This document shows, piece by piece, positions 11,501-48,299 of a stretch of 64,000 nt of DNA. The first letter of the stretch is position 1; every line of letters starts with the position of its first letter. Source of the stretch: Rebecca billardiae RCC1528 (Eukaryota; Protista; Haptophyta); contig OZ251223.1 in assembly GCA_965240325.2 (NCBI GenBank), forward strand, positions 1,984,001-2,048,000, given 5' to 3'. The notes under the pieces are model-generated. The model was given only the letters and a program-made list of their open reading frames with translations, was not told where the DNA came from and searched no databases. Both the position numbers and the translations under genes were made by a program.

Positions 11501-12661
11501 ATGATCGCGTCGTACTACTACATCGGGTACACCACCGTCGAGCTCTTCGCCTCCTCGCTCAGCGCGAGCACCAAGCTGGGCGGGCTGCTCGAGATCCTGA
11601 GTGCAGCGCCCGAGTTTGCGAGCGTGCCGGTGCGACACCGCGAGGACGAGCTGCTGCGCGCGCTCGCGATGCACTGCCCGCTGCGGCTGGACTCGGCGCG
11701 GTACAACGACCCGCACGTCAAGACGAACATCCTGCTGCAGTGCCACTTCTCCCGCCGCGAGCTCCCGCGCGACCTCGCGCACGACCTGCGCCCCGTCCTG
11801 GAGAAGGGGGTGCGGCTGCTGCAGGCCATGGTCGACGTGATCGCCTCGTCCGGCTGGCTCAGCCCGGCGATCGCGTGCATGGAGCTCAGCCAGATGGTGA
11901 CGCAGGCGCTGTGGGACCGCGACCCCGCGCTGCTCCAGCTGCCGCACTTCACGCGCGACCTCGCCAAGCGCTGCGCCGCGCGCGACGTCGAGGGCGTCTT
12001 TGACCTCATGGTGCGGCGCCGCGCCGCCCCGATGCGAGGCCCAGAGGCCGCGCGTGAGGCCGCGCGTGCGCACGGCGCGCGCGGAACGCGCGCGCAACGT
12101 GCTCGCGCGCACGCTGCTCACGCGCGCGGGCCGCCCCTCGCCCGCCGCCGCGCCCCGCTCTCGTCCACGCAGGACCTCGACGACGACGACCGCCGCTCGC
12201 TGCTGCAGATGTCGCCGGCGCAGCTCGCGGACGTGGCGCGCGTGTGCAACCGCTACCCGAGCGTCGACGTCTCGTACGCGGTCGAGGACGAGGACGAGGT
12301 GGCGAGCGGCGACACGGTGGTCGTGAACGTCGCGCTCGCGCGCGAGGCGGAGGGCAGCTTCGAGGTGCACGCGCCGCGCTTCCCCAAGCGCAAGGACGAG
12401 GGCTGGTGGCTGGTGATTGGCGAGCAGCGCACCAACACGCTCATCTCGATCAAGCGCGTGATGCTGCAGCAGAAGGCTAAGGTGAAGCTCGACTTTGTCG
12501 CGCCCGACGCGGGCGAGTACAAGTACATGCTCTACTTCATGTGCGACTCGTACCTCGGCTGCGACCAGGAGTACGAGTTCGAGCTCAAGGTCGCTGAAGC
12601 CGAAGACGAGGACGAGGGCGAGGACGAGGAGGACGAGGAGGAGGACGCTGGCGAGGCGTGA
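5515..12661 (+). CDS. BRR2: U5 snRNP 200-kDa helicase Brr2/SNRNP200; introns 5560-5695, 11312-11464, 12011-12172
   Basis: N-terminus RFRQYEYRA|TSNLVL, two Ski2-like cassettes (APTGAGKT/DEIH and APSGSGKT/DELH), Sec63 units, C-terminal YFMCDSYLGCDQEY. GT-AG introns remove the non-homologous Arg/Ala/Pro stretches. Confidence 0.97.
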
Positions 12662-26608: not shown

Positions 26609-29487
26609 ATGACGTCGGCTGCCGGGGAGCAGGCGGGGTCGAAGAAGAGCGCCGAGGCGGACGGGCACACGGTCTTTGTCGGCAACCTGCCCTTTGACTT
26701 CACCCAGTGCGCGCCGCGCCGCGCGAGCGCTCCGCATGCGGCCCGCCGGTCTGCTCACGCCGCGATGCGCGCGCGCGTGCCCGGTGGCGGCGGCGCGCAA
26801 CCACCGGGCGCAGTGAAAAGCTCGAGAAGCTGTTCGGCGACATTGGGCCCATCCGCGACTGCTACGTGGTCGGCGTCCCGTGCGTCGGCGTTGGCTACGT
26901 CAAGTACGCGCTGCCCACAGACGCAAATGCCGCCATCAACTCGCTGCACGGCAAAGCTGTCGACGGCCGCAAGCTGCGCGTCACGCTCGCCCAGGCCAAG
27001 GGGGCGGCGCGCAAGAAGGCAGGGGCCGGCGACAGCGCTGCGCGCGCCGCACCCGCCGCTCAGCCCGGCAAGCGCGGCCCTCGCGGCCCCGCGGCCCTCG
27101 CGCCCAAAGGGCGCGCGCGACTGATCGTGCGCAACCTCGCGTGGGGCGTGGAGGTGGACGAGCTCAAGAAGCTCTTCTCGGCGCACGGCCAGGTGAAGGA
27201 GGTCGTGCTGCCGACTCTCGCGGACGGGCGCAAGCGCGGCTTCGCCTTCGTCGAGATGTCCTCCCACGCCGAGTGCACCGACGCCATCTCCGCGCTCAAC
27301 CTCGAGCAGCTGCGCGGCCGGCCGATCGCGGTCGACCTCGCGCTATCAAAGGACCGGTACGATGGCGGCGGCGCGCGCGCGCAGGGCGGGCAGGCGGAGG
27401 CGCAGGAGGGTGAGGCGGGCGCGCGGGCGCGGCTCGACGGCGGCCGGGAGCAGCCGTCGCGCGCGGCGCCTGGGCGAAGCGGCGAGGTCGCCCGTGCGTC
27501 GCCGAGCGCGACAGCAGCGGCCGAGCGTGCTGCACCGCAGGAGGAGGACTCAGAGGAGGAGGAGGAGGAGGACGACTCGGAGGAGGACGAGGAGCAGGAG
27601 GAGGAGGAGGAGGGGCAGCAGCAGGGCGACGAAGACGAGAGGGGCTCGCGCGAAGCCGAGGCGGAAGGCGACGACAGCGAGTCAGCGGACGACACCTCTG
27701 AGGCTGACGGGGACGACAAGCTCGCAGCCGAGGAGGGCGGCGCGCGCGCGCCCGCGGCTGAGCGGCGCGCGGATGAGCTGGCGCGCACTGTCTTCGTGCA
27801 GAGCCTGCCGTTCGACGCGACGGAGGACGAGGTGCGCGAGGCGATGAGCGCGGCGTACGGCCCGGTGCTCTCGGCCCTGCTCGTGCGCGACAAGTCGAGC
27901 GGGCTGCCGCGCGGCAGTGCGTTTGTGATCTTCAAGCGCAAGGGCGCCGCCCGCGAGGCGGTCGAGCCCGTCGCGCCGGGCGACGAGTCGCAGGGCGTGT
28001 GGCTGCGCGGGCGGCAGCTGCGCGTGCTCGCCGCGGTGGAGCGGCAGGCGGCGGGCACGCTCACCGAGCGCCACGCCGTCGAGCGCGCCGCCGAGCGCCG
28101 CGCGCCGCCCGCCCACGGCAAGCACGCCGACCTCGCCTCCCTCGGGGTCGCGCTGCGAGGCACCGAGGCCGCAGACGGCCTCTCTCCCGCGGAGCTCAAG
28201 GCAGCCGAGATGGGGTGGGCGAAGAAGAAGGCGAAGCTCAAGTCGCCGCACTACGTGGTCTCGCCCACTCGGCTCTCGGTGCGTGCGCGCGCTGCGCGCG
28301 CGTGGGCGGCCCTGCGCGCTGCGCTCCCGCCCGCGCTGCGCTCCCGCCCCCCGTGCGCCGCCCCGCCGCCCCCCGACGGCGGCACGCCCTGAGCCTGCGC
28401 GCCCTGCCCCGCTGCGCGCCCTGCCCCGCTGCGCGCCCTGCCCCGCTGCGCGCGCGCGGTGGGGTGCCAGGTGCGCAACATCCCCTGGGCGATGACGGAG
28501 GCGCAGCTCGGCCGCGTCTTTGTCGCGGCGGCGCAGGAGGCCGGCGGCGACGGCGCGCCCGCGCCCGCGCTGCGCCACGCCAAGCTCGTCTGGATGGCTG
28601 GGAGTGGCGAGCACGCGGCCGCCGCGGCGCGCAATGCCACGGGCGCGGCCGACGCGCCGCCAGCCATTCGCAAGCACGCAGGGTACGGCTTCGTCGAGTT
28701 CGAGCAGCACGAGCACGCGCTCGCCGCGCTGCACGCGCTCTCGCACCGGCCCGACACGCTCGCGCGCCTAGGCGGCGCGCCGGCCGGCGCCGCCCGCGCG
28801 CGCGGCGCACAGCCCGCGCAGGCGCAGCCGAGGCGCGGCCTCGTGGTGGAGTTTGCGCTCGACGACACGCGCAAGCTGCAGCAGCAGCGGCTGCGGCGCG
28901 AGCGGCGCACGGCGCGCGGACGGCGCGTGGCGGAGGGCGACGGGCGGCCCTCGCCGAAGCCCGGCGCGCAGCCGGGCTCCTCCGACGCCGCCAAGCCCGC
29001 GCGTGCGCCAAAGCGCGCGCGCGCCGAGGAGGGCGCGGCGGAGAGCGGCGGGCCAGGCCGGCAGCGCGCTCGGCAGCCCTCCGACTCGCACGCAGAGCCG
29101 CGTGGCAAGCCCGGCGCGCACAAGCCGCGCGCCCGAGCCGCGGCCGGCGGTGGCGACGCTGAGCGGCACGAGCCAGCTCCCCGCCCGGCGCGGCCCTCGC
29201 CTGCCTCGCGTGCGCCCCAGCCCCAACCCGCAGCAAGGCAGCCGAGAGGCACCCAGGCCGGCAAGCGTGCAGCACCGGGCGCAGCGAGTGCTGAGCGCCG
29301 GCGCCCCTCTGCGGAGGGTGCAGATGAGCACGGGGCACCCCGCTCGCGCACGCGGCGCAAGCTGGCCGAGGCGGCGGAGGACGCAAGCTTCGATCGCGCT
29401 GTTGCACGGCACAAGCGCGCGCTCGCGCCGGTCGCGTCGAGCCAGGGCGGCGACGGTCTGCGCGCCTGGCTTGGAGGCGAGGCGTGA
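26609..29487 (+). CDS. NOP4: NOP4/RBM28 four-RRM nucleolar protein; introns 26707-26813, 28279-28470
   Basis: RRM1 TVFVGNLPF, RRM2 ARLIVRNLAW..KRGFAFV..GRPIAVDLALSKDRY, acidic tract, RRM3 RTVFVQSLPFD..GSAFV, KLKSPHYVVSPTRLS|VRNIP, GYGFVEF..HEHALAAL, LVVEFALDD. Confidence 0.9.
28394..28455 (+). repeat. Short intronic tandem repeat (CCTGCCCCGCTGCGCGC, about 3 copies)
   Basis: Direct reading inside NOP4 intron 2. Confidence 0.8.
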
Positions 29488-32501: not shown

Positions 32502-35500
32502 TCACGCGGCCTGCTCGCGCAGGCGGCGCAGGCGCTTGCACGTGGCCTTGTGCGCGGGCCACCCCGCCTTGAGGCAGGCCGCTCCGCAGAAGCGCTCCAC
32601 CTTGCATCCGCTGCACACGCGCAGCTCCACGCCGCTCGTCGCACCGCGTGCGCCGCAGTGCGCGCAGCACGGCACCGCGGTCGCCGTTGGGCGCTGCCTC
32701 GGGCTCGGGCTTGCTGGGGTGCCGGGCGCGACGCCGGGCGCGTCGTCGTCGTCGCGCGCGCTCTGCGCCTTTGCGAGCAGGGCCTCCGCGCGCGAGACGG
32801 GCGCCATGTCCTCGGCGACGAGCCGCGCGCGCTGCTCCGCCGACATGGCCTCCCAGCGGAAGCCTGCGCGCTTCTCCGCTGACATCTTCTCCCAGCGCCG
32901 CACGAGGAGGCGGAGGGTCTCCACGACGAAGGCCTCGTCGTGCGCGCCGGCCGGCGCGCCGTCGGGCTGCGCCGCGCGCCCCTTGGCGCGCGCCATCGAC
33001 GCGGCGCGCAGCAGGACGAAGCAGCCAAAGCCCGAGTTCGCAAAGGCGCGGTACACGAGCGCGGCGCGCAGCTCCTGCGTTCCCTGCGCCGTGATGTCGG
33101 CCTTGGAGAACTCGGCGGCGGCGGGGCTCGCCTCCGCATCGCCGTGCGCGGAGGCGGCCCGGAACGAGGCGTGCGCGCGCGATACGAGGCGAATGGCTTG
33201 GACCAACTCCTCGCCGGGCCCCGCCGGGCGCGCGCCGTCCACGGCGCCGAGCGCGTCTTCAAACTTGGCCTTGAGGTCTGCGCCCGAGAGCAGGCAGTGC
33301 GACAAGGACGGGCACGACGCGACGAGCCGGCCGAGCGCGATGCCCGCCTCCGCGACCAGGAGGCCGCCGTCCTTCCGGTCGGTGCACGGGAAGGGCAGGT
33401 TGTGCACGAAGCCGTCGAGCGCGGGGCAGTACAGCCGCGCGAGCACCTCGGAGATGTCCGTGGGGCGCACGCCGCGCCACTCCACCACCGTGAGCGCCGC
33501 CAACGCCTTCTGCGCCGAGCCCGTGGTGTCGCCGCCGACCGCCGCCTCCGACGCGACCGCGGGCAGCCCCCACGGGAAGCTGGCGAAGCGCGAGCGGCGC
33601 GCGGCGCTCGATGGGACGCCGCTCTTCCCAATGCCCGCGGCCGCGTGCACTGCAAGCCCGAGGAACTCGCCGCCGGCCCACTGCCCCTGCGGCGCGCGGA
33701 TGAGTCCGATCGAGCGGCGCACGGCCGCGTCGCGCAAGGCGGCGCCCAGGCTGGCCGCCGCGCACGGCGGCTCGAGCGCCAGCACATCCTCCTCCTCAGT
33801 CGAGCCGCACTCCGCCGAGCCGGCCGCGCCAGCGGCCGCGTCGGCGTCGAGCGCCGCGGACGGGCCCCCCTGCGCGCGCGTCTCGAGCAGCGCCAGCCGC
33901 ATGAGCAGCGTGCACCCAAACGCGCGCAGGTGGTGCGGCGCGTGGTCCTTCGACTTGGAGGCGGCCGAGGGCCCGCTGAGGAACTCCTTCACGCAGTCGG
34001 CGGCGGGAACCCCCGAGGCGCCGCTGCGCTGCATGTACTCCACGAACATCGGGTCGTGCTCCAGCCGGCCCGCGTCGTCGTGCGCGCGCGGGTCGTCCGC
34101 GTGGAGCGGCAGCTCGTCTGCGAGCGCGCGGTCGAGCGCGGCCGCGTCCCACACCGTCGCGTCCGCTCCGCGCGCGAACGCGAGGGCGCGCAGCTGCTCG
34201 GAGGCGGCGAGCGCGGCGAGGGGCACGGCGCGCGCGCACGCGCGCAGCGCGCGCTGCGTCTCCATCGGCACCTCGCCCATGTGGTCGTCGTCGACGTGCC
34301 ACGCGCGCGGGTGCGTGTACGCCGCGCGGAAGACAGCCGCCACTGCGAGCGCCGCGCGCGCGACGCGGTCGCCGTACGCGCACGCCTCGGCGCCGGCGGC
34401 GTCATCGTCGGCGTCGGCCGCGGAGGCGACGCGCGGCAGCGAGGGGTGTGCGATCGCGGCGCGCAGCGTGGCGACGGCCTGACGCAGCGCGTCGGCGGGG
34501 CCCACGTCCGTGCGCACGAGCGACCAGATCTGGGCGCGCGCGTCGCAGCGCGCGCACAGCGCGCCCGCGCGCAGCCGAGCCGCGTCGCGCTTGGCCGCGT
34601 CCGCCGGCTCGGCCGCCGTGGCCGCGCGCGCGTCGAGCGCGTCCGCGCACGCGCGCAGCGCGCGCGCGCCCTCGGCCGCGTGCTCGTCCCCGAGGGCCAG
34701 CAGCGCCGCCGCCAGCCGCTCCGCGCCGCGCGGCCACGCGGGCTCGAGCGCGACCGCGCGCCGCCCGTCCGCCACCGCCTTCTCGAGCAGCAGCCGACCG
34801 CCATGCAGGTGCGCACGCGTCGTCGAGCGCAGCTGCCGGCCCAGGCGCGTGCGCACGTGGGCGAGGTTGGCGCGGACGGCGGCGCTCTCCTCGATCGCCG
34901 CCGCGCGCTCCCACGCCGCCACCGCCGCCCACAGCCGCCCGGCGCCAAAGTGCGCCTTCCCGGCCTCGCGCGCGTCCTGCGCGGACTCGAGCGCGCCGAT
35001 GCTCCGCGCGTGCTGCACGTAGCCAGGCTCTGCCGCGGGGCGCTTGGCGAGGGCGGCCTCGACGGCGGCCTGGGGCATGCAGCTCGGGCTCTGCGCGTCA
35101 CCCCTCGATGCGCGCATGCGCGACATTGCCACGTGCGACATGCCGTGCATCTCGTGCGCAACGTCGAACCGGGTCCTCGGCGCGACGGTCGCCACCCACG
35201 CGTCGCGCCTCGCGGCGGTCGTGAACCACGACGCGGCGGCGGCGTGGTCCTCGAAGCACGCGAGCGCCTGCGTGACCGTCTCGAGGTAGTCCCACGCGGC
35301 GGCGGCCTGCGCGTCGAGGCCGGGCGGCACGGCGCCTTGTGCGGGCGCAGGGAGGCAACGCACCGCCGGGACGCGCAGAACGCCCAGCGAGGCGTGGAGC
35401 TCCTGCGGGCCGTGCTGCCCGCGGAGCGCGGCCGCGACGTGGTCGAGCATGAGAGCGAGGTCGAAGAGGTCCACAGCCCGCGCACGCGATGCCTGGCGCT

Positions 35501-35549
35501 CAAAGCGGCGCGCGAGGTCTTCGTACGAGGCGGAGACGCGTGGGGCCAT
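32502..35549 (-). CDS. TPR-containing protein with C-terminal MYND zinc finger
   Basis: TPR-like AREAGKAHFGAG..ANLAHVRTRLG..DGRRAVALEPAWPRG; MYND CAHC..CSGCKVERFCGAACLKAGWPAHKATC. Confidence 0.8.
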   Translation of the reverse strand: MAPRVSASYEDLARRFERQASRARAVDLFDLALMLDHVAAALRGQHGPQELHASLGVLRVPAVRCLPAPAQGAVPPGLDAQAAAAWDYLETVTQALACFEDHAAAASWFTTAARRDAWVATVAPRTRFDVAHEMHGMSHVAMSRMRASRGDAQSPSCMPQAAVEAALAKRPAAEPGYVQHARSIGALESAQDAREAGKAHFGAGRLWAAVAAWERAAAIEESAAVRANLAHVRTRLGRQLRSTTRAHLHGGRLLLEKAVADGRRAVALEPAWPRGAERLAAALLALGDEHAAEGARALRACADALDARAATAAEPADAAKRDAARLRAGALCARCDARAQIWSLVRTDVGPADALRQAVATLRAAIAHPSLPRVASAADADDDAAGAEACAYGDRVARAALAVAAVFRAAYTHPRAWHVDDDHMGEVPMETQRALRACARAVPLAALAASEQLRALAFARGADATVWDAAALDRALADELPLHADDPRAHDDAGRLEHDPMFVEYMQRSGASGVPAADCVKEFLSGPSAASKSKDHAPHHLRAFGCTLLMRLALLETRAQGGPSAALDADAAAGAAGSAECGSTEEEDVLALEPPCAAASLGAALRDAAVRRSIGLIRAPQGQWAGGEFLGLAVHAAAGIGKSGVPSSAARRSRFASFPWGLPAVASEAAVGGDTTGSAQKALAALTVVEWRGVRPTDISEVLARLYCPALDGFVHNLPFPCTDRKDGGLLVAEAGIALGRLVASCPSLSHCLLSGADLKAKFEDALGAVDGARPAGPGEELVQAIRLVSRAHASFRAASAHGDAEASPAAAEFSKADITAQGTQELRAALVYRAFANSGFGCFVLLRAASMARAKGRAAQPDGAPAGAHDEAFVVETLRLLVRRWEKMSAEKRAGFRWEAMSAEQRARLVAEDMAPVSRAEALLAKAQSARDDDDAPGVAPGTPASPSPRQRPTATAVPCCAHCGARGATSGVELRVCSGCKVERFCGAACLKAGWPAHKATCKRLRRLREQAA

Positions 35550-36143: not shown

Positions 36144-37448
36144 TCAGGTGAGCGCGAGTGTGACAGCACCCGGAAGCGGCGAGTTAGTGGCGTCGTTCCC
36201 GCCGACGAGGACGATGGTGGTCATGGTGCCGGGGTGATGACTGTGCTCTTCATCGACATCAGCGACGAGTGACGCGCTGTCGTCCACTTTCAGTTCGAGC
36301 GCGCCACGGTCGCTCCTGCTCTCGCCGTGCCGAGGCTGGGACAGGGACTCGCACGCATGGTTGTACCTACGTACAGCTCGCCGGCCCGCCAGCGAGCCGT
36401 GCTCCGCCCCGACTGCGGGTGCGAGGATCGCCTCATGGGCTCCAGCGCGCCCCCCTGCGCTCGGCCCATCCCCACGCGCACTCGTGCCGCTCAGCTCCAG
36501 CCGGCTCCAGCCAGGGGCTGGGACGCGGGGCGTGGCGGCAGCGTACGCCTCGAGTGACTCGCGCGTGATGTCGAGCTGTAACACGTCGTCCAAGACGAGC
36601 GGCTGCCCGTAGCTCTCCGGGGCGACCGAGCAGCCACTGCAGCCGCCCGTCACGACCATGGTGCCACCGCTCAGGACACTCGCATGGCCCGAGCGAGCCA
36701 GGGACAGCGCGGGCGCGTCCGTGATTGGCGCCGGGCGCAGCTCCCTCCATCGCACGACCGGAGGGTGTACGTCCAGCAACCAGAGCCCGCCGTCCGCCCC
36801 AAGCGCAGTGAACCCGCCGAACACGAGCACGGACGCGCCGTCGGGCGTGGGCACCGCCGTGTGCGCACAGCGCGCGGGCGGAGGGCTCCCCTCAACTGCC
36901 GGCGTGTGCCACGTGGGCGTCGAGCACCCCGGCGAGAGCGAGAGAATGTGAACGTCGTTCAGCGCCTCACTCTCGCCGTAGCCACCGAAGATGACGACCG
37001 CCGGGTCGCCCGCCTGATCGCGCAGCGCCGTCGCCGTGTGTCCAGATCGCGCCGACGGCTGCGGAGAGTCGCCACCGGCGCGCAGCTGCGTCCACGCAAC
37101 GCGCTCGTCGACAATGTCGAGGCGCCAGAGGTCGGAGAAGCTGTGGCCGCCGCCGAATCCGCCGTGTACGATGGCGCAAGACGGTCCAACGCGCGCGCAC
37201 GCCAGCCCGCCGCGATGGCTCGGGCCATCGCCCCCGCCTGCAGCGTGCTCGCGCCGCCACGCGCTGCCATCACGGCTCGAGTGCACGAGCAGCGGCTGCG
37301 ATGACTGGGGACCGTGCTCGGATTCATCGTACCCACCAAGCAGGAAGAGCCGCTGGCTGACCCCACCACCTAGCCGGCAGAGCCGAGCGTCGACGACTGC
37401 AGGCGCGCGAGATACAGTCGCACACACGGCTCGTCGCGCGGCGGCCAT
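36144..37448 (-). CDS. Kelch-repeat protein
   Basis: Repeated R-x-[GA]-H-[TA]...hhhFGG units (ARSGHTAT..VVIFGGYG..LNDVHIL; ARCAHTAV..LVFGGF; ARSGHASV..MVVTGG). First ATG at 37448. Confidence 0.85.
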   Translation of the reverse strand: MAAARRAVCATVSRAPAVVDARLCRLGGGVSQRLFLLGGYDESEHGPQSSQPLLVHSSRDGSAWRREHAAGGGDGPSHRGGLACARVGPSCAIVHGGFGGGHSFSDLWRLDIVDERVAWTQLRAGGDSPQPSARSGHTATALRDQAGDPAVVIFGGYGESEALNDVHILSLSPGCSTPTWHTPAVEGSPPPARCAHTAVPTPDGASVLVFGGFTALGADGGLWLLDVHPPVVRWRELRPAPITDAPALSLARSGHASVLSGGTMVVTGGCSGCSVAPESYGQPLVLDDVLQLDITRESLEAYAAATPRVPAPGWSRLELSGTSARGDGPSAGGRAGAHEAILAPAVGAEHGSLAGRRAVRRYNHACESLSQPRHGESRSDRGALELKVDDSASLVADVDEEHSHHPGTMTTIVLVGGNDATNSPLPGAVTLALT

Positions 37449-37505
37449 GCTGGTGAATGGGCCGGCTTGGGATTTCGTCGTGGCGGCGGCAGGGCAGGGG
37501 CGCAA

Positions 37506-38636
37506 CAAGGGTAGTAAGGGTGAGCAACTCCGCTGGCGACAGCCGCCGAGGTCGGTCGGGCTCTGTTTGCCTCGGCGAGCGGTGCGAGCGGAGCGGAGCG
37601 AGTACTATCAGCGGCGGAGGGCGCTGAGGCCGCGCACGGCGTGAGGCGCGGCGTCGGCCGAGTCGGTCCGCGGAGGATGCGCGGCGCTCGGCCCGCTGCG
37701 CAGCAGCAGTGCGCCTCACTTTGCCCCGAGCGCCGTCCTCCGCGTCGCCTCCTTCCCGCCTTGGAGCAGCACGCATGTGCGCGCCGCCACCTCGAAGGCG
37801 GCACGGGCTTGCTCAGACGACCGCGCGCGTGTGGCGCGCGACTTGGTCGACTGCGCGCGCGCGCTGCCGCGGTGCAAGGTAGCGCCACCGCATACGCGCG
37901 CCGTGGCCTTGCGAGAGCGTGTGCGCGGACGTGAGTGCGAGCTCACACACATGTCTAATGCTGCTTGCGCATCCGACTAGTGCCGAGTGACGTGAAGCTG
38001 GAAAAGACAGCGGCGTGAGTGTTGGTACCATCGATGCGGAGCCTTAGCGTCCGCTCGCATTCGTGATGAGAAGGCATACACACGGCCAGGCCTTCGTCAT
38101 GGGTATCCAATGTCACTCAACACCTCGCTGATCGACCGACGAGCGCCGGCGTGAGGCACAGCGAACCATTCGTGAGAGCAAGCAGACAAGCGAGCACTAC
38201 GCTCATGAGATGGCCGTGAGCAAAGGCTCGCGCGGGCACGGCGCGCGTATGCGGTGGCGCTACCTTGCACCGCGGCAGCGCGCGCGCGCAGTCGACCAAG
38301 TCGCGCGCCACACGCGCGCGGTCGTCTGAGCAAGCCCGTGCCGCCTTCGAGGTGGCGGCGCGCACATGCGTGCTGCTCCAAGGCGGGAAGGAGGCGACGC
38401 GGAGGACGGCGCTCGGGGCAAAGTGAGGCGCACTGCTGCTGCGCAGCGGGCCGAGCGCCGCGCATCCTCCGCGGACCGACTCGGCCGACGCCGCGCCTCA
38501 CGCCGTGCGCGGCCTCAGCGCCCTCCGCCGCTGATAGTACTCGCTCCGCTCCGCTCGCACCGGGCGCCGAGGCAAACAGAGCCCGACCGACCTCGGCGGC
38601 TGTCGCCAGCGGAGTTGCTCACCCTTACTACCCTTG
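37506..38636. mobile_element. Non-autonomous fold-back DNA transposon with 400-bp TIRs (P- or hAT-like termini)
   Basis: 37506-37905 is nearly the exact reverse complement of 38237-38636. Termini CAAGGG...CCCTTG; 7-bp direct repeat GGCGCAA at 37499-37505 and 38637-38643. Confidence 0.92.
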
Positions 38637-38753: not shown

Positions 38754-41700
38754 ATGGGGGCGGGGCTGGTGGACGCGGACGGCGCCGTTCGCGGCCTGCG
38801 AGCGCGCCTCCTCGGGTCGGTGGCCCCGAACGGCGCGCCGGCTTGCGACGAGCGCTCAGATACGCGCGCGTACACGTGCCTCGAGTACGTGCACATCTGC
38901 GTTTTTGTGCTGAGCGTCCTCTTCGCCGGCACGCTCTGGGGCTGTGCGGGCGCGACGTTGTGCTACCACTTTGCGTGGTCGTCCAGCCTGTGCTGGTTGT
39001 GCACGTGGGCGGTGCCGCGGTTACGGCGCGCGCGTGCGCACGGATACCTATACTCGAGCGACGACGATCCCACGCGCGAGCTCCTCGCGTCCGCCCGGCG
39101 GGCGGGCCCGGAACGTGAGCTCACGCCAGGCAGCGACGAGCCGCGCGCACCGACCGCGACCGTGTACGTGACCGTCTTCACCGAGCCGTTCGATCAGGTG
39201 CTGCAGCCGACGATCGAGCAGGCGCTCCGCGTTGTGCGCTTCTACAACCGCCTCGCCGCCGCGCCGGACGAGGCGCCGCGCGCCAACCTGGTCGTGCTTG
39301 ACGACGGCCTGCAGCTCGTGCCGGACGCGGAGCGGGGCGCGCGGCTCGGGTACTACCACGCGCACGGGATCGCGTACATCGCGCGGCCGCGCGACGGGGA
39401 GGGCGGGTTCGTGCGCGAGGGCTTCTTCAAGAAGGCGGGCAACCTCAACTTTGCGCACACGCTCAGCGCGCTCGCGCGCGCGACACGGCCCGACATCTCC
39501 GCGCTCGACGGCGCACACGTGGAGCACGCGCGCGCTTTCGGGCGCGGCCGCCGCACGGCGGCGGGGCGGTGCTGCGAGCCGGACGGGCCCGAGGGGGCGT
39601 GGTGCAGCATACACGGCGTGGGCAAGGCGCGCCTGTGCGCGCGCGCACGCGCGCCCGACCCCGCCGCCACCGCCGCTCCGTCGCGGCCGCTGCACGCGGC
39701 GAGCCCCGAGCAGCTGGCGCGCGCGGCGGTGCACGGCGTGTGCGGGCTGGGGCAGTACGTGCTGCTGCTGGACAACGACTCGTGGGCTCCGGAGAGCGCG
39801 CTCGTGGACTCCGTGCGCCTGCTCCAGCGCGCGCCCGACGCCGCGTACCTGCAGCACGTCTCCGCGCCGCTGAACGAGGCGGAGTCGCTCGTGACGCGCC
39901 TGCACGGCGTCAGCTCACTCATCTTCTGGGGGGTCACGATGCAGAGCCGCGCGTGGGCGGCGCCGTGCCCGCTGCTCGGGCACAACGTGGTGCTGCGCCG
40001 CGCCGCGGTCGACGCGGCGGGCGGGTACCACACCGGCCGCGGCGCCGACGACCTCAGCACCGGCGTCTCCGTGCGCGTGCGCACGGGCGGCCACGGCCGT
40101 CTCGCCAAGCTGTACCCGTGGCGGCTCGGCTTCCGAGAGGGGCTGCCGGTGTGCTACCGCCGGCTGCTGGCGCAGTGGCAGCGGTACGGCGCGGTGGCGA
40201 ACGGCACGGTGACCAACCCGCTCGCGGACTGGGCGACGCGCGGCGCGCTGCAGCCCAACCTCGGCGCGCTGCTGCTCACGCGCGCAGCGGCGCGCCGCGG
40301 CGGCGGCGAGCGCGGCGAGCGCGGCGAGCGCGGCGCGCCGCCCGCCGCGCCGCCGCATGCGGCGGCCGCCGCGGACGAGTGGGCGCAGCCAGGGCGCACG
40401 GCGGTGTCAGCCGCCGAGCTCTTCGACCTCTTCCTCTTCTTCGTGCCCGGGCTGCAGGGCGCCGTCTTCTTCCTCGCCTTCCTGCCGTACGTGCAGCTCG
40501 TGCTGTGGCGCGCCGCCATCCTCGGACCGGCCGCGCTCGGAGGGGCGCCCGCCGCGCCGGCCGCGGGCGCGGTGCAGCCGAGCGAGGAGGTGGAGCTCGG
40601 CGGCGCGCACGTCGGGCTCGGCGGCGGCTTCGTCGTCGCCGCGCTCCTCCCCTTCCTCGCCGCGGCGACGCTCGCGCTCCAGCGGGACGCGCCCGCGCTG
40701 CCGGCGCGCGCGCGCGCGCTGCATGCTCTGCTTGGCGGGCCGCTCTACCTGTCTCTCTGGCTTGCGTTCACGCGCGGCTTTGTGGTCGATCACTGGTGCA
40801 AGGCGATCGACGCGTACGCGACGACGAGCGTGGGCCGCGCGTCCCGCGTGCCGCTCGCGCAGCACGCGCGAGCGCACCGGGTGCAGCTCCTGCTCGGCAC
40901 GGCCTGCGCGCTGTGCGGCGCGTGCGCGCTCGCGCGCGCGCCCGCGGCGCTGAGGCTCACCGCCGCGGCAGACCTGCTAGTCGGCGTCTTCTTGCTGAGC
41001 GCGGCGTACGTGCTCGACCCGCCCGTGCTGCCCCCCGCGCTGGCTCACCCGCCACTCGGCGCCCTGCGTGCGCTCGGCGCGCTCGGCTGCCGCGGCGCAC
41101 GCCGGGTCGCGGCCGCCGTGCACCCAGCCGCGCTGTGCGCGTGCCCACTCGGCGACGAGCCGGCGAGGCCGGCGCGGGTCGGCCGTGGCGGGCGGGCGCG
41201 CGGCAAGCCGGTGGTGGACGAGCTCCAGCTCCAGCCCGCCGAGCCCGACGCCGCCGCCAACGCCGACAGGGCAGCTGTCGCTGCCGCCGCCATGCCCAAG
41301 GTTGAGAGCGGTGCGGGCTGCGCGCGCAGGGCGCTCGGAGCGGTGCGCGGCGCACTGCGCGCGCTGGGCAGCCTGAGTGAGCGCGCAGACGAGCGACTGC
41401 CTGCGCTGGACGGCGTGCGCGCGCTCGCGTGCCTGTGGGTCATGCTGTACCACGCGCTCGGCTACTGGTTCTCCCGCCGGTGGGACGGCCAGCGTGGCGC
41501 GTACGTGTGGGCAGGCGCCTTCTCCGAGTGGGCGGAGGCCAAGCCGGCACCCTACCTCGCCCTGCTCGACAGCGTGCTTCTCTCCGGCGCGGTGACGGCG
41601 GGCTCGCTCGGCGTGGACATGTTCCTCGTCCTCTCGGGCTTCCTGATCGGGCGCATGCTGCTCGCGCAGATCGGGCGCGCGCGCGCAGCCGCGCCCGCCG

Positions 41701-42950
41701 CCGCGACCGGCCCCCAGCGCGCGGCAGCCGTGCAGCTCGCCGCTGCCGCGCCGGGCTCCGGGCTGTCGTGGGCCCTGTTCATGCTGCGGCGCGCGCTGCG
41801 CCTCATGCCCGTGCACCTGCTCGCGATGGCGTGCTCCGCGCCGTGGCGCGACCAGCGCCTGGCGTGCGAGCGCAACTGGGCGTCGCACCTTCTGTTCGTC
41901 AACAACCTGCGCGGCGGGATGGGCGACGCGTGCGTCGGGCAGTCGTGGTCGGTGGCGCTCGAGTTCCAGCTGTACGCGCTCTCGCCGCTGCTGCTGGGCT
42001 GGATCGCGACGGAGCGCTCGGGGGATGGTGACGAGCGCGTGCGCCGCGCGCTCGTCGCCGGCGCCCTCGGCACCGTCGCCGTCGCCACCGCGCGCGCGGC
42101 GGCCGGCGCGGCGTGGCCGCTGCTGCTGGACGGCGCGGTGGTGGCGTCGCCCGACCTCGTGCTCACGCAGGTGCCCACGCGCTCCGCGGCGTACCTGGCG
42201 GGCGTGGTCGCGGCGGTGCTGCACGAGCGCGGCGAGCAGCAGCGCCAGCGCGGCGGCGCGCCCTGCGCCGACATCGTGGCGCGGCTCACGGCCGGCCGCG
42301 CGCGCTGCGTGGCCGTCGGCGCGTGCACGCTCGCGCTCGCGGCGCTCGGGCCGGCAGATGCGGCCGGCGCGATCCGGCAGTGGAACCGCGAGTGGCCCGT
42401 GCTGCACGCGCTCGTCTTTGTGGCGGGGCGGCCGCTCTTCGGGCTGTGCACGGCCTTCTGGCTGCTGCACGCGCTGCGCTGGCCGAGCGCCCTCCGCGCG
42501 TTCCTCTGCGCGCGCGCGTGGACGGCCGTGGCCGCGGTCGCGTACCCCGCCTACCTGCTGCAGCACGTGCCGCTCTCGGTCGCGGCGCAGCTGACGGCGC
42601 GCGTGCCGTCCGCGCTCACGCTGCACGGCGTGCGAGGCGGCGCGCTCGCCTGCGCCGTGTTCGCCGCGTACGCCAGCCTCATGTGCGCGTCGACCCTGCT
42701 TCTCGCCGCGCTCGCCCACCTCGCCTTTGAGCGGCCGGTCCTGCGCTGGGTGGCGCGCGTGCGCGGCGCGACGGCGGCGGCGGTGCAGGCAGAAGTGGCG
42801 GCGGCGGCGGAGATCGAGATGGCAGCAGGAGCGGCGGACCCGCGATCGACCACGCCGGTTCCGCCGCCTGGCGCCGCTGATCCTGCTGCTACTGGCGCTG
42901 CTCATCAAACTGTCGTGGCTGGTGCGACAAGAGCGATGCATAATTATTAG
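38754..42950 (+). CDS. Membrane GT2 glycosyltransferase fused to an acyltransferase-3 (OafA/OatA-type) domain, about 1398 aa
   Basis: GT2 motifs VLDDG, KKAGNLN, LLLDND, LGHNVVLR, ADDL, QWQRY followed by hydrophobic helices. AT3 motifs LDGVRALACLWVMLYH (R-x10-H), GVDMFLVLSGFLI, RRALRL, WSVALEFQLY, AYPAYLLQH, FERP. No stop between them. Confidence 0.85.
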   Translation: MGAGLVDADGAVRGLRARLLGSVAPNGAPACDERSDTRAYTCLEYVHICVFVLSVLFAGTLWGCAGATLCYHFAWSSSLCWLCTWAVPRLRRARAHGYLYSSDDDPTRELLASARRAGPERELTPGSDEPRAPTATVYVTVFTEPFDQVLQPTIEQALRVVRFYNRLAAAPDEAPRANLVVLDDGLQLVPDAERGARLGYYHAHGIAYIARPRDGEGGFVREGFFKKAGNLNFAHTLSALARATRPDISALDGAHVEHARAFGRGRRTAAGRCCEPDGPEGAWCSIHGVGKARLCARARAPDPAATAAPSRPLHAASPEQLARAAVHGVCGLGQYVLLLDNDSWAPESALVDSVRLLQRAPDAAYLQHVSAPLNEAESLVTRLHGVSSLIFWGVTMQSRAWAAPCPLLGHNVVLRRAAVDAAGGYHTGRGADDLSTGVSVRVRTGGHGRLAKLYPWRLGFREGLPVCYRRLLAQWQRYGAVANGTVTNPLADWATRGALQPNLGALLLTRAAARRGGGERGERGERGAPPAAPPHAAAAADEWAQPGRTAVSAAELFDLFLFFVPGLQGAVFFLAFLPYVQLVLWRAAILGPAALGGAPAAPAAGAVQPSEEVELGGAHVGLGGGFVVAALLPFLAAATLALQRDAPALPARARALHALLGGPLYLSLWLAFTRGFVVDHWCKAIDAYATTSVGRASRVPLAQHARAHRVQLLLGTACALCGACALARAPAALRLTAAADLLVGVFLLSAAYVLDPPVLPPALAHPPLGALRALGALGCRGARRVAAAVHPAALCACPLGDEPARPARVGRGGRARGKPVVDELQLQPAEPDAAANADRAAVAAAAMPKVESGAGCARRALGAVRGALRALGSLSERADERLPALDGVRALACLWVMLYHALGYWFSRRWDGQRGAYVWAGAFSEWAEAKPAPYLALLDSVLLSGAVTAGSLGVDMFLVLSGFLIGRMLLAQIGRARAAAPAAATGPQRAAAVQLAAAAPGSGLSWALFMLRRALRLMPVHLLAMACSAPWRDQRLACERNWASHLLFVNNLRGGMGDACVGQSWSVALEFQLYALSPLLLGWIATERSGDGDERVRRALVAGALGTVAVATARAAAGAAWPLLLDGAVVASPDLVLTQVPTRSAAYLAGVVAAVLHERGEQQRQRGGAPCADIVARLTAGRARCVAVGACTLALAALGPADAAGAIRQWNREWPVLHALVFVAGRPLFGLCTAFWLLHALRWPSALRAFLCARAWTAVAAVAYPAYLLQHVPLSVAAQLTARVPSALTLHGVRGGALACAVFAAYASLMCASTLLLAALAHLAFERPVLRWVARVRGATAAAVQAEVAAAAEIEMAAGAADPRSTTPVPPPGAADPAATGAAHQTVVAGATRAMHNY

Positions 42951-45032: not shown

Positions 45033-48000
45033 ATGGACGAACATCAACGGGCCGAGGAGCAGCTGCTCCGGCGCAGGTCGGAGCGTGGCGACGCACGCTC
45101 CACCTTCCTCTTAGCCGAGCGCCTCGACCGTGGTGACAGTTTTGCCCGGGACGAAGCCTTCCGCCTGCACCGCAGGCTCGCTGACGACCACGGCCTCGCC
45201 GACGCCCAGAACCGGCTTGGCGAGATCTGTGCGTCAGGTACGCACGGGCAGGCGAAAGATGCAGTGGAGGCAGCCCGCTGGTACCGGCTTGCGGCCGACC
45301 AGGGCAACGCAGTCGCGCAGTGCAACCTGGGCCAGTGTTATCAGCACGGCGAAGGTGTGCCGCAGGACATGGCTGAGGCCGTACGCTTGTACCGGCGTGC
45401 GGCCGAGCAGGGCGACGCAGGCGCGCAGTGCAACCTGGGCTGGTGCTGTGAGCGCGGCGAGGGGGTGCCGCAGGACATGGCCGAAGCTGTACGCTGGCAC
45501 CGGCTGGCGGCCGAGCAGGGCAACGCATATGCGCAGTGCAACCTGGGCTGGTGCTATCAGCACGGCGAAGGTGTGCCGCAGGACATGGCTGAGGCCGTAC
45601 GCTTGTACCGGCGTGCGGCCGAGCAGGGCGACGCAGTCGCGCAGTGCAACCTGGGCCAGTGCTATCAGCACGGCGAAGGTGTGCCGCAGGACATGGCTGA
45701 GGCCGTACGCTGGCACCGGCTGGCGGCCGAGCAGGGCAACGCATATGCGCAGTGCAACCTGGGCTGGTGCTGTGAGCGCGGCGAGGGGGTGCCGCAGGAC
45801 ATGGCCGAAGCTGTACGCTGGCACCGGCTCGCGGCCGAGCAGGGCAACGCAGACGCGCAGAGCAACCTGGGCTGGTGCTGTGAGCGCGGCGAGGGGGTGC
45901 CGCAGGACATGGCCGAAGCTGTACGCTGGTACCGGCTGGCGGCCGAGCAGGGCAACGCAGACGCGCAGTACAACCTGGGCCAGTGCTATCAGCACGGCGA
46001 GGGTATGCCACAGGACATGGCCGAGGCTGTACGCTGGTACCGGCTCGCGGCCGAGCAGGGCAACGCAGACGCGCAGTGCAACCTGGGCCAGTGTTATCAG
46101 CTCGGCGAAGGTGTGCCGCAGGACATGGCTGAGGCCGTACGCTTGTACCGGCGTGCGGCCGAGCAGGGCGACGCAGGCGCGCAGTGCAACCTGGGCCAGT
46201 GTTATCAGCACGGCGAAGGTGTGCCGCAGGACATGGCTGAGGCCGTACGCTTGTACCGGCGTGCGGCCGAGCAGGGCGACGCAGGCGCGCAGTGCAACCT
46301 GGGCTTGTGCCATCAGCACGGCGAAGGTGTGCCGCAGGACATGGCTGAGGCCGTACGCTGGCACCGGCTGGCGGCCGAGCAGGGCAACGCATATGCGCAG
46401 TGCAACCTGGGCTGGTGCTGTGAGCGCGGCGAGGGGGTGCCGCAGGACATGGCCGAGGCTGTGCGCTGGTACCGGCTCGCGGCCGAGCAGGGCGACGCAG
46501 GCGCGCAGTGCAACCTGGGCCAGTGTTATCAGCACGGCGAAGGTGTGCCGCAGGACATGGCTGAGGCCGTACGCTTGTACCGGCGTGCGGCCGAGCAGGG
46601 CGACGCAAGCGCGCAGTGCAACCTGGGCTTGTGCCATCAGCACGGCGAAGGTGTGCCGCAGGACATGGCTGAGGCCGTACGCTGGTACCGGCTGGCGGCC
46701 GAGCAGGGCGACGCATATGCGCAGTGCAACCTGGGCTGGTGCTATCAGCACGGCGAGGGTATGCCACAGGACATGGCCGAGGCTGTACGCTGGTACCGGC
46801 TCGCGGCCGACCAGGGCCACGCAGTCGCGCAGTGCAACCTGGGCCAGTGCTATCAGCACGGCGAAGGTGTGCCGCAGGACATGGCCGAGGCTGTGCGCTG
46901 GTACCGGCTTGCGGCCGACCAGGGCGACGCAGTCGCGCAGTGCAACCTGGGCCAGTGTTATCAGCACGGCGAAGGTGTGCCGCAGGACATGGCTGAGGCC
47001 GTACGCTTGTACCGGCGTGCGGCCGAGCAGGGCGACGCAGGCGCGCAGTGCAAGCTGGGCTGGTGCTGTGAGCACGGCGAAGGTGTGCCGCAGGACATGG
47101 CTGAAGCCGTACGCTGGCACCGGCTGGCGGCCGAGCAGGGCAACGCATATGCGCAGTGCAACCTGGGCTGGTGCTGTGAGCGCGGCGAGGGGGTGCCGCA
47201 GGACATGGCCGAAGCTGTACGCTGGTACCGGCTGGCGGCCGAGCAGGGCAACGCAGACGCGCAGTACAACCTGGGCCAGTGCTATCAGCACGGCGAGGGT
47301 ATGCCACAGGACATGGCCGAGGCTGTACGCTGGTACCGGCTCGCGGCCGACCAGGGCCACGCAGTCGCGCAGTGCAACCTTGGCGGGCGCTATCAGCACG
47401 GCGAGGGTGTGCCGCAGGACATGGCAGACGCTGTACGCTGGTACCGGCTCGCGGCCGACCAGGGCAACGCAGTCGCGCAGTGCAACCTGGGCCAGTGCTA
47501 TCAGCACGGCGAAGGTGTGCCGCAGGACATGGCCGAGGCTGTGCGCTGGTACCGGCTTGCGGCCGACCAGGGCCACGCAGGCGCGCAGTGCAACCTGGGC
47601 CAGTGCTATCAGCACAGCGAAGGTATGCCGCAGGACATGGCTGAGGCCGTACGCTTGTACCGGCTTGCGGCCGAGCAGGACAACGCAGACGCGCAGTGCC
47701 ACCTGGGCTGGTGCCATCAGCACTGCGAAGGTGTGCCGCAGGACATGGCCGAAGCTGTACGCTGGTACCGGCTTGCAGCCGAGCGAGGCCACGCATATGC
47801 GCAGTGCAAGCTGGGCCATTGCTATAAGCACGGCAAGGGAGTGCGGCAGGATGCTGCTGAGGCAGCACTGTGGTTCCGCCTGGCAGCGGATGGGGACTCG
47901 CCCGAGGGCTGCAACGAGCTCGGGCGGCTGATGCTGGCAGGCCTAGGCGTGCACAGCAATGTGGTGGAGGGCGCACGGCTGCTGCGCCGTGCCAGCGAGC

Positions 48001-48299
48001 TCAATAGCTCATGGGACACAAGCACTGTGCTCGCCGAGTTCGCAGGAGAGCGTGAGGTGGTGTCAAAGTGCTGCATTATCTGCGCCAAGACTGGTCGTGG
48101 GCTGAAGAAGTGCAACGGGTGCCGAGTGGCAGTCTTCTGCTGCAGTGAGCACCAGCGGCACGCATGGAGGGCACACAAGCCGCACTGCGCCGAGTGGTGT
48201 GCCGACATCACGCCGTCGCCACCAGCACCCCCGGGCCTGGGACGACTACATCAAGCAGACAATATGAATGACGATGATGTCTATGATTCGGCCGGATGA
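45033..48299 (+). CDS. Sel1-like repeat protein with C-terminal MYND zinc finger
   Basis: 36-aa units AQCNLGxCYxxGxGVPQDxAEAVRWYRLAAEQG; C-terminal CIIC..LKKCNGCRVAVFCCSEHQRHAWRAHKPHC. Confidence 0.92.
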   Translation: MDEHQRAEEQLLRRRSERGDARSTFLLAERLDRGDSFARDEAFRLHRRLADDHGLADAQNRLGEICASGTHGQAKDAVEAARWYRLAADQGNAVAQCNLGQCYQHGEGVPQDMAEAVRLYRRAAEQGDAGAQCNLGWCCERGEGVPQDMAEAVRWHRLAAEQGNAYAQCNLGWCYQHGEGVPQDMAEAVRLYRRAAEQGDAVAQCNLGQCYQHGEGVPQDMAEAVRWHRLAAEQGNAYAQCNLGWCCERGEGVPQDMAEAVRWHRLAAEQGNADAQSNLGWCCERGEGVPQDMAEAVRWYRLAAEQGNADAQYNLGQCYQHGEGMPQDMAEAVRWYRLAAEQGNADAQCNLGQCYQLGEGVPQDMAEAVRLYRRAAEQGDAGAQCNLGQCYQHGEGVPQDMAEAVRLYRRAAEQGDAGAQCNLGLCHQHGEGVPQDMAEAVRWHRLAAEQGNAYAQCNLGWCCERGEGVPQDMAEAVRWYRLAAEQGDAGAQCNLGQCYQHGEGVPQDMAEAVRLYRRAAEQGDASAQCNLGLCHQHGEGVPQDMAEAVRWYRLAAEQGDAYAQCNLGWCYQHGEGMPQDMAEAVRWYRLAADQGHAVAQCNLGQCYQHGEGVPQDMAEAVRWYRLAADQGDAVAQCNLGQCYQHGEGVPQDMAEAVRLYRRAAEQGDAGAQCKLGWCCEHGEGVPQDMAEAVRWHRLAAEQGNAYAQCNLGWCCERGEGVPQDMAEAVRWYRLAAEQGNADAQYNLGQCYQHGEGMPQDMAEAVRWYRLAADQGHAVAQCNLGGRYQHGEGVPQDMADAVRWYRLAADQGNAVAQCNLGQCYQHGEGVPQDMAEAVRWYRLAADQGHAGAQCNLGQCYQHSEGMPQDMAEAVRLYRLAAEQDNADAQCHLGWCHQHCEGVPQDMAEAVRWYRLAAERGHAYAQCKLGHCYKHGKGVRQDAAEAALWFRLAADGDSPEGCNELGRLMLAGLGVHSNVVEGARLLRRASELNSSWDTSTVLAEFAGEREVVSKCCIICAKTGRGLKKCNGCRVAVFCCSEHQRHAWRAHKPHCAEWCADITPSPPAPPGLGRLHQADNMNDDDVYDSAG
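45306..47789 (+). repeat. Coding tandem array of 23 x 108-bp near-identical units
   Basis: Counted from the translation; exact 108-nt period without indels, flanked by divergent capping repeats. Confidence 0.93.

Follow-up and report, generated by a model that had tools for sequence, protein, structure and literature searches.

A predicted single-chain fusion of a membrane GT2 synthase and an AT3 acyltransferase in the haptophyte Rebecca billardiae

We analyzed a 64,000-nucleotide stretch of the genome of the haptophyte Rebecca billardiae RCC1528 (GCA_965240325.2, contig OZ251223.1, forward-strand positions 1,984,001 to 2,048,000; hereafter the window, whose own numbering is used), focusing on a gene that joins a membrane glycosyltransferase of family 2 (GT2) to an acyltransferase of family 3 (AT3). 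The whole gene (38754-42950) and all of its features described below lie on the forward strand. It is a single stop-free frame of 1398 codons that starts with the ATG at 38754, with A at −3 and G at +4, and ends with the TAG at 42948-42950. Pfam profiles matched Glyco_trans_2_3 (PF13632) at amino acids (aa) 335-539 with 50.4 bits (cut-off, 27) and Acyl_transf_3 (PF01757) at aa 883-1301 with 69.6 bits (cut-off, 31), the latter over profile positions 2-304 of 326. The gene is present as one copy in the 72-Mb genome (41 contigs), in which the guanine-plus-cytosine (GC) content is approximately 60-77%. An earlier reading of the same DNA by a model (the first-pass annotation) had proposed one uninterrupted frame, and this was borne out by the lack of an internal stop, by the single copy, and by a fusion conserved in at least two further organisms.

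The two halves are connected by a linker of 129 residues (aa 754-882; 41013-41399) that is poorly conserved, of low complexity, and net basic, with approximately 18 Lys and Arg versus 11 Asp and Glu residues counted over aa 761-885; it includes Met847 and a helix at aa 853-875. The GC content at third codon positions (GC3) was 0.87-1.00 across the frame, in the same register, from approximately aa 1 to 1350 and dropped only in the C-terminal tail. Within the linker, the register was unchanged, with GC3 of 0.88-0.91 and GC at second codon positions of 0.60-0.63, and its overall GC content was 80% versus 51-58% in the flanking non-coding DNA. The openness of the linker alone is weak evidence for a continuous protein, because 31% of shuffles of these 387 nucleotides at 80% GC also lacked an in-frame stop.

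To search for homologues, aa 130-1329 were compared exhaustively with 1.84 billion representative proteins, and the 158 stored proteins were subjected to a domain scan, which located both halves in at least two other organisms. The fused orthologues P0001 and P0157 (1380 and 1385 aa, respectively; approximately 53% identity to the window protein) originate from two independent samples, a Logan assembly and a metagenome of JGI, whose automatic name for P0157 covers the acyltransferase only; a fragment was additionally found in Tara data. The contigs L001 and L018 belong to the same species and are 99.6% identical with zero substitutions in the linker, and hence gave no dN/dS for it. A more distant fused orthologue, P0006, is encoded on a 4.1-kb contig, with identities of 35% in the GT2 half and 30% in the AT3 half. 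This contig has a GC content of 48%, at which its 276-nucleotide linker remained stop-free in only 0.9% of shuffles (p ~0.009), and the remaining two frames of the linker contain six and two stops. The linker length varies among the three organisms, and the halves remain in frame in all of them.

Because the linker carries in-register codon bias, both Pfam domains lie in one frame, and the 48%-GC orthologue retains the same frame, we consider on the basis of sequence that window 38754-42950 encodes a genuine single-polypeptide fusion of two enzyme domains. The alternative is that the locus gives two separate proteins by means of an internal promoter or start at Met847, splicing within the linker, or proteolysis. 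The in-frame ATG of Met847 (41292), 36 codons ahead of the first AT3 helix, would suit such a division, as would the low complexity and poor conservation of the linker and its statistically ordinary openness; this ATG and a GCTCAC motif at 41043, both cited in the first-pass annotation as possible points of separation, are indeed present. However, the linker shows coding-type codon bias in register and is much richer in GC than intergenic DNA, the halves share one frame in three organisms with varied linker lengths, including the 48%-GC contig, and Met847 is not kept in P0001. A separate AT3 isoform would, moreover, be compatible with a full-length protein, and we therefore regard two separate products as very unlikely.

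The fusion appears rare. Beyond the window protein and its orthologues P0001/P0157 and P0006, no protein matching both halves was present among the matches listed from the 1.84 billion representatives, and no relatives of the locus were found in the metagenome-contig or genome-contig sets searched. A word-index protein search, which is poorly suited to a low-complexity, GC-rich protein, gave only two and three matches. P0002 (1044 aa, GT2 only) was considered as an unfused orthologue and rejected, as its contig from an ENA metagenome terminates inside the linker in a Nextera transposase adapter (contig positions 6140-6194); the called stop and the last residues of P0002 are artefacts. P0009, an AT3-only match and, fused proteins aside, the nearest AT3 relative, is encoded at 3-1457 of a 1.5-kb contig (Logan ERR1712137). 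No stop interrupts its frame back to the beginning of this contig, and the 25 upstream codons are hydrophobic, like the final helix of the GT2 module. The contig may represent a truncated fourth orthologue of the fused type in which the linker is short, the stretch being too short for significance.

These sequence comparisons suggest that the fusion is confined to a few protists. Surveys of AT3 architectures list no glycosyltransferase fusion (PMC9558356, PMC12423673), and full-text literature searches returned no paper describing both domains together. The first-pass annotation had named no characterised equivalent, and none emerged from the listed protein matches, the AT3 and TmAT reviews, or the full-text searches. 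The GT2-AT3 fusion is thus conserved but undescribed, and looser combinations of GT2 and AT3 in bacteria may exist.

The GT2 half begins with an N-terminal membrane helix region (aa 41-89; 38874-39020), modelled as one 49-residue helix with a hydropathy of 2.06 at aa 48-66, which aligns with the helices of BcsA ahead of its glycosyltransferase domain. It is followed by a predicted cytosolic GT-A catalytic domain (aa 95-467; 39036-40154), to which PF13632 was assigned and which reached Z 25 to BcsA. The pLDDT of this domain was mostly >90 outside a non-conserved insert at approximately aa 269-311, the sole long low-confidence stretch of the model. Fifteen positions were invariant in an alignment of 81 homologues (E144, D184, R211, R221, G223, F225, K227, N230, N232, D340, D342, G409, H410, D433, and E462), and these span the D, DxD, and catalytic-base positions of GT-A enzymes together with a K-A-G-N block.

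The DDG motif (aa 183-185; 39300-39308) contains D184, found in all 81 homologues, and G185, found in 78. YIARPR starts at aa 208, and FFKKAGNLN (aa 224-232; 39423-39449), in which F225, K227, N230, and N232 are each present in 81 of 81 sequences, is what we take to be the counterpart of the K-A-G-N motif of cellulose synthases. The DND motif (aa 340-342; 39771-39779) corresponds to the metal- and nucleotide-sugar-binding DxD motif, with both Asp residues conserved in all homologues. GHN (aa 409-411; 39978-39986) is likewise complete, except for N411 in a single sequence (80/81), and ADD (aa 431-433; 40044-40052) occupies the position of the TED catalytic base, where D433 is conserved throughout and position 432 is Glu in 74 sequences and Asp in seven. 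FREG lies at aa 460-463. Finally, QWQRY (aa 474-478; 40173-40187), located on the interface helix, is a non-canonical counterpart of QxxRW, which on this helix is the classic mark of processivity. In a seven-member clade of fused and bacterial-like proteins, Q474, R477, and Y478 are invariant, and the motif reads Q-x-x-R-Y-G. The fungal clade reads E-L-x-R-W-x-K-Y, in which case the canonical R-W falls on Q474-W475. A membrane GT2 with DDG, DND, ADD, and QWQRY had been proposed in the first-pass annotation; every one of these motifs lies at its place, and transmembrane helices are predicted.

Downstream of the catalytic domain, model helices and hydropathy indicated a membrane channel module (40443-41012) composed of TM5 (aa 564-590), TM6 (aa 614-642), an amphipathic segment (aa 651-682), TM7 (aa 709-728), and TM8 (aa 731-753). 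The order of these helices is that of BcsA, namely TM5, TM6, IF3, TM7, and TM8. Single halves used as sequence queries matched no solved structure, and only the profile of the 81 sequences reached BcsA (E-value, 6e-9), followed by plant CesA (1e-6 to 1e-3). At E ≤0.001, cellulose synthases were the only significant matches; CslF6 was at 0.04, and a few unrelated matches were at ≥0.01. The AlphaFold2 model of the GT2 half (pLDDT, 80.8; pTM, 0.84) was aligned with BcsA chains 9fnn_A (Z 25.9 over 442 residues; root mean square deviation, 4.0) and 5ej1_A (Z 25.4 over 439 residues; root mean square deviation, 3.5). The alignment covers model residues 1-719, the last of which is aa 758, and thus includes the catalytic domain, the interface helices, and the C-terminal membrane helices. 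Other structural neighbours were CesA (Z ~19-22), hyaluronan synthases (~17-19), and a cyclic glucan synthase (16.5). The retained catalytic motifs and the predicted fold of the family suggest that the GT2 half is active.

In a FastTree phylogeny of the GT2 half, in which long branches and skewed composition are flagged for the fused clade, the fused eukaryotic proteins formed one clade with 98% local support. This clade was sister to the bacterial-like proteins P0003, P0004, and P0007, and the resulting seven-member group received 100% local support. These three proteins are approximately 1100-1200 aa long, are encoded by low-GC genes, and show 29-32% identity; the surroundings of at least one of them are clearly bacterial, as its contig also carries LpxB, LacI, and RNR genes. 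In the long N-terminal region of P0007 (L020, 1301-4882), a GH26-like segment was detected at aa 390-448 (E-value, 1e-8). GH26 enzymes are mostly beta-mannanases, and the segment is a weak lead on the kind of polymer. The next branch out comprises P0100 and P0120 (approximately 1200-1500 aa), in which the same type of GT2 is followed at the C-terminus by PMT_2 (GT-C-like), likewise a combination of a synthase with a modifier.

Most homologues belong to a large clade including PFL1_02199 of Pseudozyma flocculosa and FKW77_000328 of Venturia effusa, both annotated only as uncharacterised or hypothetical; the fungal members, themselves uncharacterised, typically carry an N-terminal DUF7928. Similarly, the best cluster in a structural search of the ESM Atlas was an Ascomycota cluster of DUF7928 plus Glyco_trans_2_3 (TM 0.68 over 585 residues), followed by a Bacillota cluster and then a diatom-rich cluster; no AT3 was present in any of these three. 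The resemblance to a fungal-type GT2 clade suggested in the first-pass annotation therefore holds for the largest homologue group and for the best structural cluster but not for the nearest kin, which are the bacterial-like proteins at 29-32% identity. Two other affiliations were considered and rejected. The OpgH/MdoH profile NF003958 gave 15.9 bits over 85 residues against a cut-off of 419. The switch motif of the fungal mixed-linkage glucan synthase TFT1 (AfTFT1 residues 548-558; 2026 preprint) was unmatched in the window protein at up to five substitutions and gave one chance-like match at up to four substitutions among the 158 stored proteins; this is a weak test of the TFT1 lineage, the tree containing no TFT1 sequence.

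The AT3 half (AT3/TmAT domain, aa 883-1330; 41400-42743; PF01757) was modelled with a pLDDT of 81.5. AT3 proteins are defined by an R-X10-H motif in helix 1 and an RXXR motif at the cytoplasmic face of helix 3 (PMC9833829). In the window protein, the former corresponds to R889-X10-H900 in helix 1 (41418-41453), with H900 as the putative catalytic His, and the latter to R1013-x-x-R1016 in helix 3 (41790-41801). In an alignment of 20 AT3 sequences, R889 and H900 were each conserved in at least 90%, and both Arg residues of RXXR were invariant. An F-x-x-L-S-G-F block and a W-S-x-x-x-E block are also kept, the latter as W-S-V-A-L-E (aa 1065-1070; 41946-41963), in which E1070 is invariant and the Trp and Ser are nearly so.

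Comparison of the AT3 model with 48,161 representative solved chains gave HGSNAT (Z 14.2 and 12.4) and GWT1 (Z 9.7) over approximately 315-325 residues, and the next match was at Z 5.1. HGSNAT and GWT1 are solved members of the TmAT superfamily, which includes AT3 (PMC12423673), and the ten-helix TmAT fold was evident in the predicted model. Structure prediction had been put forward in the first-pass annotation as a check, and both modelled halves match the expected relatives, BcsA and TmAT proteins; its proposal of a full AT3 domain after the linker likewise agrees with the Pfam match, the two motifs, and the predicted fold. With these catalytic motifs and this predicted fold kept, the AT3 half also appears to be active. 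In a feature-based search, it grouped with ordinary, mostly eukaryotic, AT3 clusters, and its closest stand-alone relatives include a eukaryotic gene beside calpain. A recent origin as a copy of one of the stand-alone AT3 genes of the same genome (approximately ten) was rejected, as phmmer against their open reading frames returned nothing at E <1e-3.

The predicted topologies of the two halves are compatible. Four membrane crossings, an even number, follow the cytosolic glycosyltransferase domain, and the linker is therefore predicted to be cytosolic. AT3 proteins start in the cytoplasm, take up acyl-CoA on that side of the membrane, and offer its acyl group on the extracytoplasmic face (PMC9833829, PMC12423673). 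Because the end of the linker and the start of AT3 would both be cytosolic, no extra helix is needed for the fusion. From the predicted structure and by analogy with the published OafB model, the glycan exit and the acyl-transfer site would face the same side of the same membrane.

From the models and from analogy with characterised enzymes, we infer this topology, the processivity of the GT2 half, the coupling of the halves, and an O-acylated glycan or glycolipid as the product. In the proposed mechanism, the cytosolic GT-A domain of the BcsA-like GT2 (approximately aa 40-753) would use a nucleotide sugar to extend a glycan, which would cross the membrane through a channel built from the helices of the enzyme itself. 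The basic, cytosolic linker would connect this module to the ten-helix AT3/TmAT domain, whose pore would admit cytosolic acyl-CoA and allow the acyl group to be moved to a sugar hydroxyl at the extracytosolic face, with His900 as the putative catalytic residue and Arg889, Arg1013, and Arg1016 as candidate CoA-binding residues. The tether would hold the acyltransferase beside the exit of the synthase, such that the growing chain would receive O-acyl groups, probably acetyl or succinyl, on leaving the channel. That one protein polymerises, translocates, and O-acylates a glycan is, judged from the models and analogies, somewhat probable. The further proposal that it represents a haptophyte, self-contained counterpart of bacterial synthase-dependent exopolysaccharide secretion, in which one chain polymerises, exports, and esterifies a beta-glycan for the cell covering or organic scales, is tentative, and we place it below even chances.

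Several observations speak against a protein that polymerises, exports, and acylates, besides the frequency with which a linker of this GC content is open by chance. Both folds are predictions. The QxxRW motif is non-canonical, with one canonical residue replaced whether it is read as QWQRY or, in the register of the family, as L-L-A-Q-W. Non-processive membrane GT2 enzymes occur among the structural neighbours, including PcManGT (Z 20.8 over 336 residues) and a cluster of beta-monoglucosyldiacylglycerol synthase (TM 0.58), and the pairing of GT2 with PMT_2 in P0100/P0120 would suit a route through lipid-linked sugars, of which PMT_2 or GT-C-like domains are the usual users. No AT3 gene adjoins any of the bacterial relatives on the contigs examined. 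In P0006, the AT3 half scores below every Pfam threshold and carries the His one residue earlier than the register; it also lacks the W-S of the W-S-x-x-x-E block, and this half may be diverging.

The altered motif, the two non-processive neighbours, and the neighbouring P0100/P0120 clade would all accord with a real fusion whose GT2 is non-processive and transfers a single sugar or a few sugars to a lipid (diacylglycerol, ceramide, sterol, or polyprenyl phosphate), with AT3 acylating the glycolipid or lipid-linked sugar. Nevertheless, the structural matches of highest score and greatest length are to processive synthases, aligned through the interface and all four channel helices (Z 25, approximately 440 residues), and cellulose synthases supply the sole matches to solved structures at E ≤0.001 at the sequence level, CslF6 being weaker. 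The conserved W-x-K/R-Y block after the motif, moreover, resembles that of hyaluronan and chitin-oligosaccharide synthases. We consider a non-processive, glycolipid-forming enzyme unlikely, albeit less so than two separate proteins.

A further possibility concerns the AT3 half, which could act on another acceptor or contribute to structure or export, a function formerly suggested for IcaC. The role of IcaC is still called unresolved (PMC9558356), and the displaced His and the missing W-S of P0006 would also accord with this possibility. When the channel module (aa 400-790) and the AT3 domain (aa 876-1345) were docked as a predicted complex, the score was 0.00, a result that is neither for nor against an interaction and lends no support to a packed interface. 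On the other hand, the window protein and P0001 keep all the AT3 catalytic motifs tested, and the two active sites are predicted to serve a common side of the membrane, the extracytosolic one. A stable fusion of two enzymes usually means action in one pathway, and we assign this possibility a low probability. Polymerisation, export, and O-acylation of a glycan by one chain remains our preferred interpretation.

Upstream of the GT2-AT3 gene lies a divergent Kelch-repeat gene (36144-37508, minus strand). Most of the intergenic region between the two is taken up by an inverted repeat of 410 nucleotides (37506-37915 and 38227-38636; 99% complementary; 311-nucleotide spacer), which stops 118 nucleotides before the ATG of the GT2-AT3 gene. 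The repeat looks like a fold-back element within a shared promoter region. The window also encodes a Brr2/SNRNP200 helicase in one frame of 2433 codons, along with MYND fingers, Sel1 arrays, and Kelch proteins. The best named relatives of the helicase region are from Pavlovales sp. CCMP2436 (74%) and Prymnesium parvum (71%), with land plants at 66-68%, a ranking that by itself points to a haptophyte as the most likely host. A 1088-aa protein with approximately 25 Sel1 repeats and a C-terminal MYND zinc finger is encoded at 45033-48299, and a protein encoded at 32502-35549 on the minus strand likewise ends in a MYND finger. ARAGORN predicted tRNA-Leu(GAG) at 12068-12153 and tRNA-Ala(TGC) at 29072-29141, both on the minus strand and in or beside long GC-rich frames, and no Rfam family was above threshold across the window.

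The role of IcaC beside the poly-N-acetylglucosamine (PNAG) synthase was termed "an outstanding problem" in a 2022 review, which also raised the question of how AT3-only proteins recognise their acceptors and noted that very few eukaryotic AT3 proteins have known targets (PMC9558356). Because a natural fusion fixes both the partner and the stoichiometry in one chain, a coupled reaction of polymerisation, export, and acylation becomes directly testable. The fusion also provides a functional lead for eukaryotic AT3 proteins and for an uncharacterised GT2 clade that is widespread in fungi, diatoms, and some bacteria, and it points to an acylated surface glycan in haptophytes, so far not sought. 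If the tentative proposal of self-contained secretion is correct, this would be, as far as we found, the first AT3 domain of a eukaryote whose acceptor can be identified.

Among characterised enzymes, the GT2 half is most similar to BcsA and, more broadly, to CesA, CslF6, and the hyaluronan synthases, with which it shares the architecture of a membrane GT2 comprising a cytosolic GT-A domain, interface helices, and four membrane helices. The D, DxD, (T)ED-type, and K-A-G-N-type motifs are shared with BcsA, whereas the identity to BcsA is only 15-18% and QWQRY replaces QxxRW. GHN stands in place of what we take to be the corresponding FFCGS-type block of BcsA. A Pfam scan of the window protein revealed no PilZ domain, plant zinc finger, or class-specific region, and none of these synthases carries the C-terminal AT3 domain. 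The fungal proteins with DUF7928 and Glyco_trans_2_3 have the invariant catalytic residues in common with the window protein, but differ in their N-terminal DUF7928, the retained R-W of the motif, an identity of approximately 20%, and the lack of AT3. P0003, P0004, and P0007 share the Q-x-x-R-Y-G motif and the C-terminal helices; unlike the window protein, they are low-GC, have a long extra N-terminal domain, and have no AT3 as either a domain or a neighbour.

Known AT3 fusions involve SGNH, alanine racemase, and NRF domains (PMC9558356, PMC12423673). OafA, OafB, and OatA (AT3-SGNH), VanT (AT3-alanine racemase), and the animal NRF-AT3 proteins resemble the window protein in that an AT3 domain with R-X10-H and RXXR is fused to a second domain. 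The window protein, in contrast, has a polytopic GT2 at its N-terminus as the partner, a combination absent from those surveys, and neither an SGNH domain nor an eleventh helix was found in the Pfam scan and the model. The closest functional parallels are found in bacteria, where the enzyme synthesising and exporting a glycan is paired with a stand-alone AT3 protein that is believed to O-succinylate this glycan beyond the cytoplasm, as in IcaA/IcaD with IcaC for staphylococcal PNAG and in OPG synthesis with MdoC/OpgC (PMC9558356). These systems agree with the view of the first-pass annotation that GT2 and AT3 normally act as separate proteins in bacteria, being encoded by operons or neighbouring genes, whereas the haptophyte gene would place both activities in one eukaryotic chain. 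If the proposal of self-contained secretion holds, the protein would also be, as far as we found, the first case in nature of a processive synthase covalently coupled to a TmAT acyltransferase and a single-protein model for the coupling of IcaA with IcaC and of OPG synthesis with OpgC.

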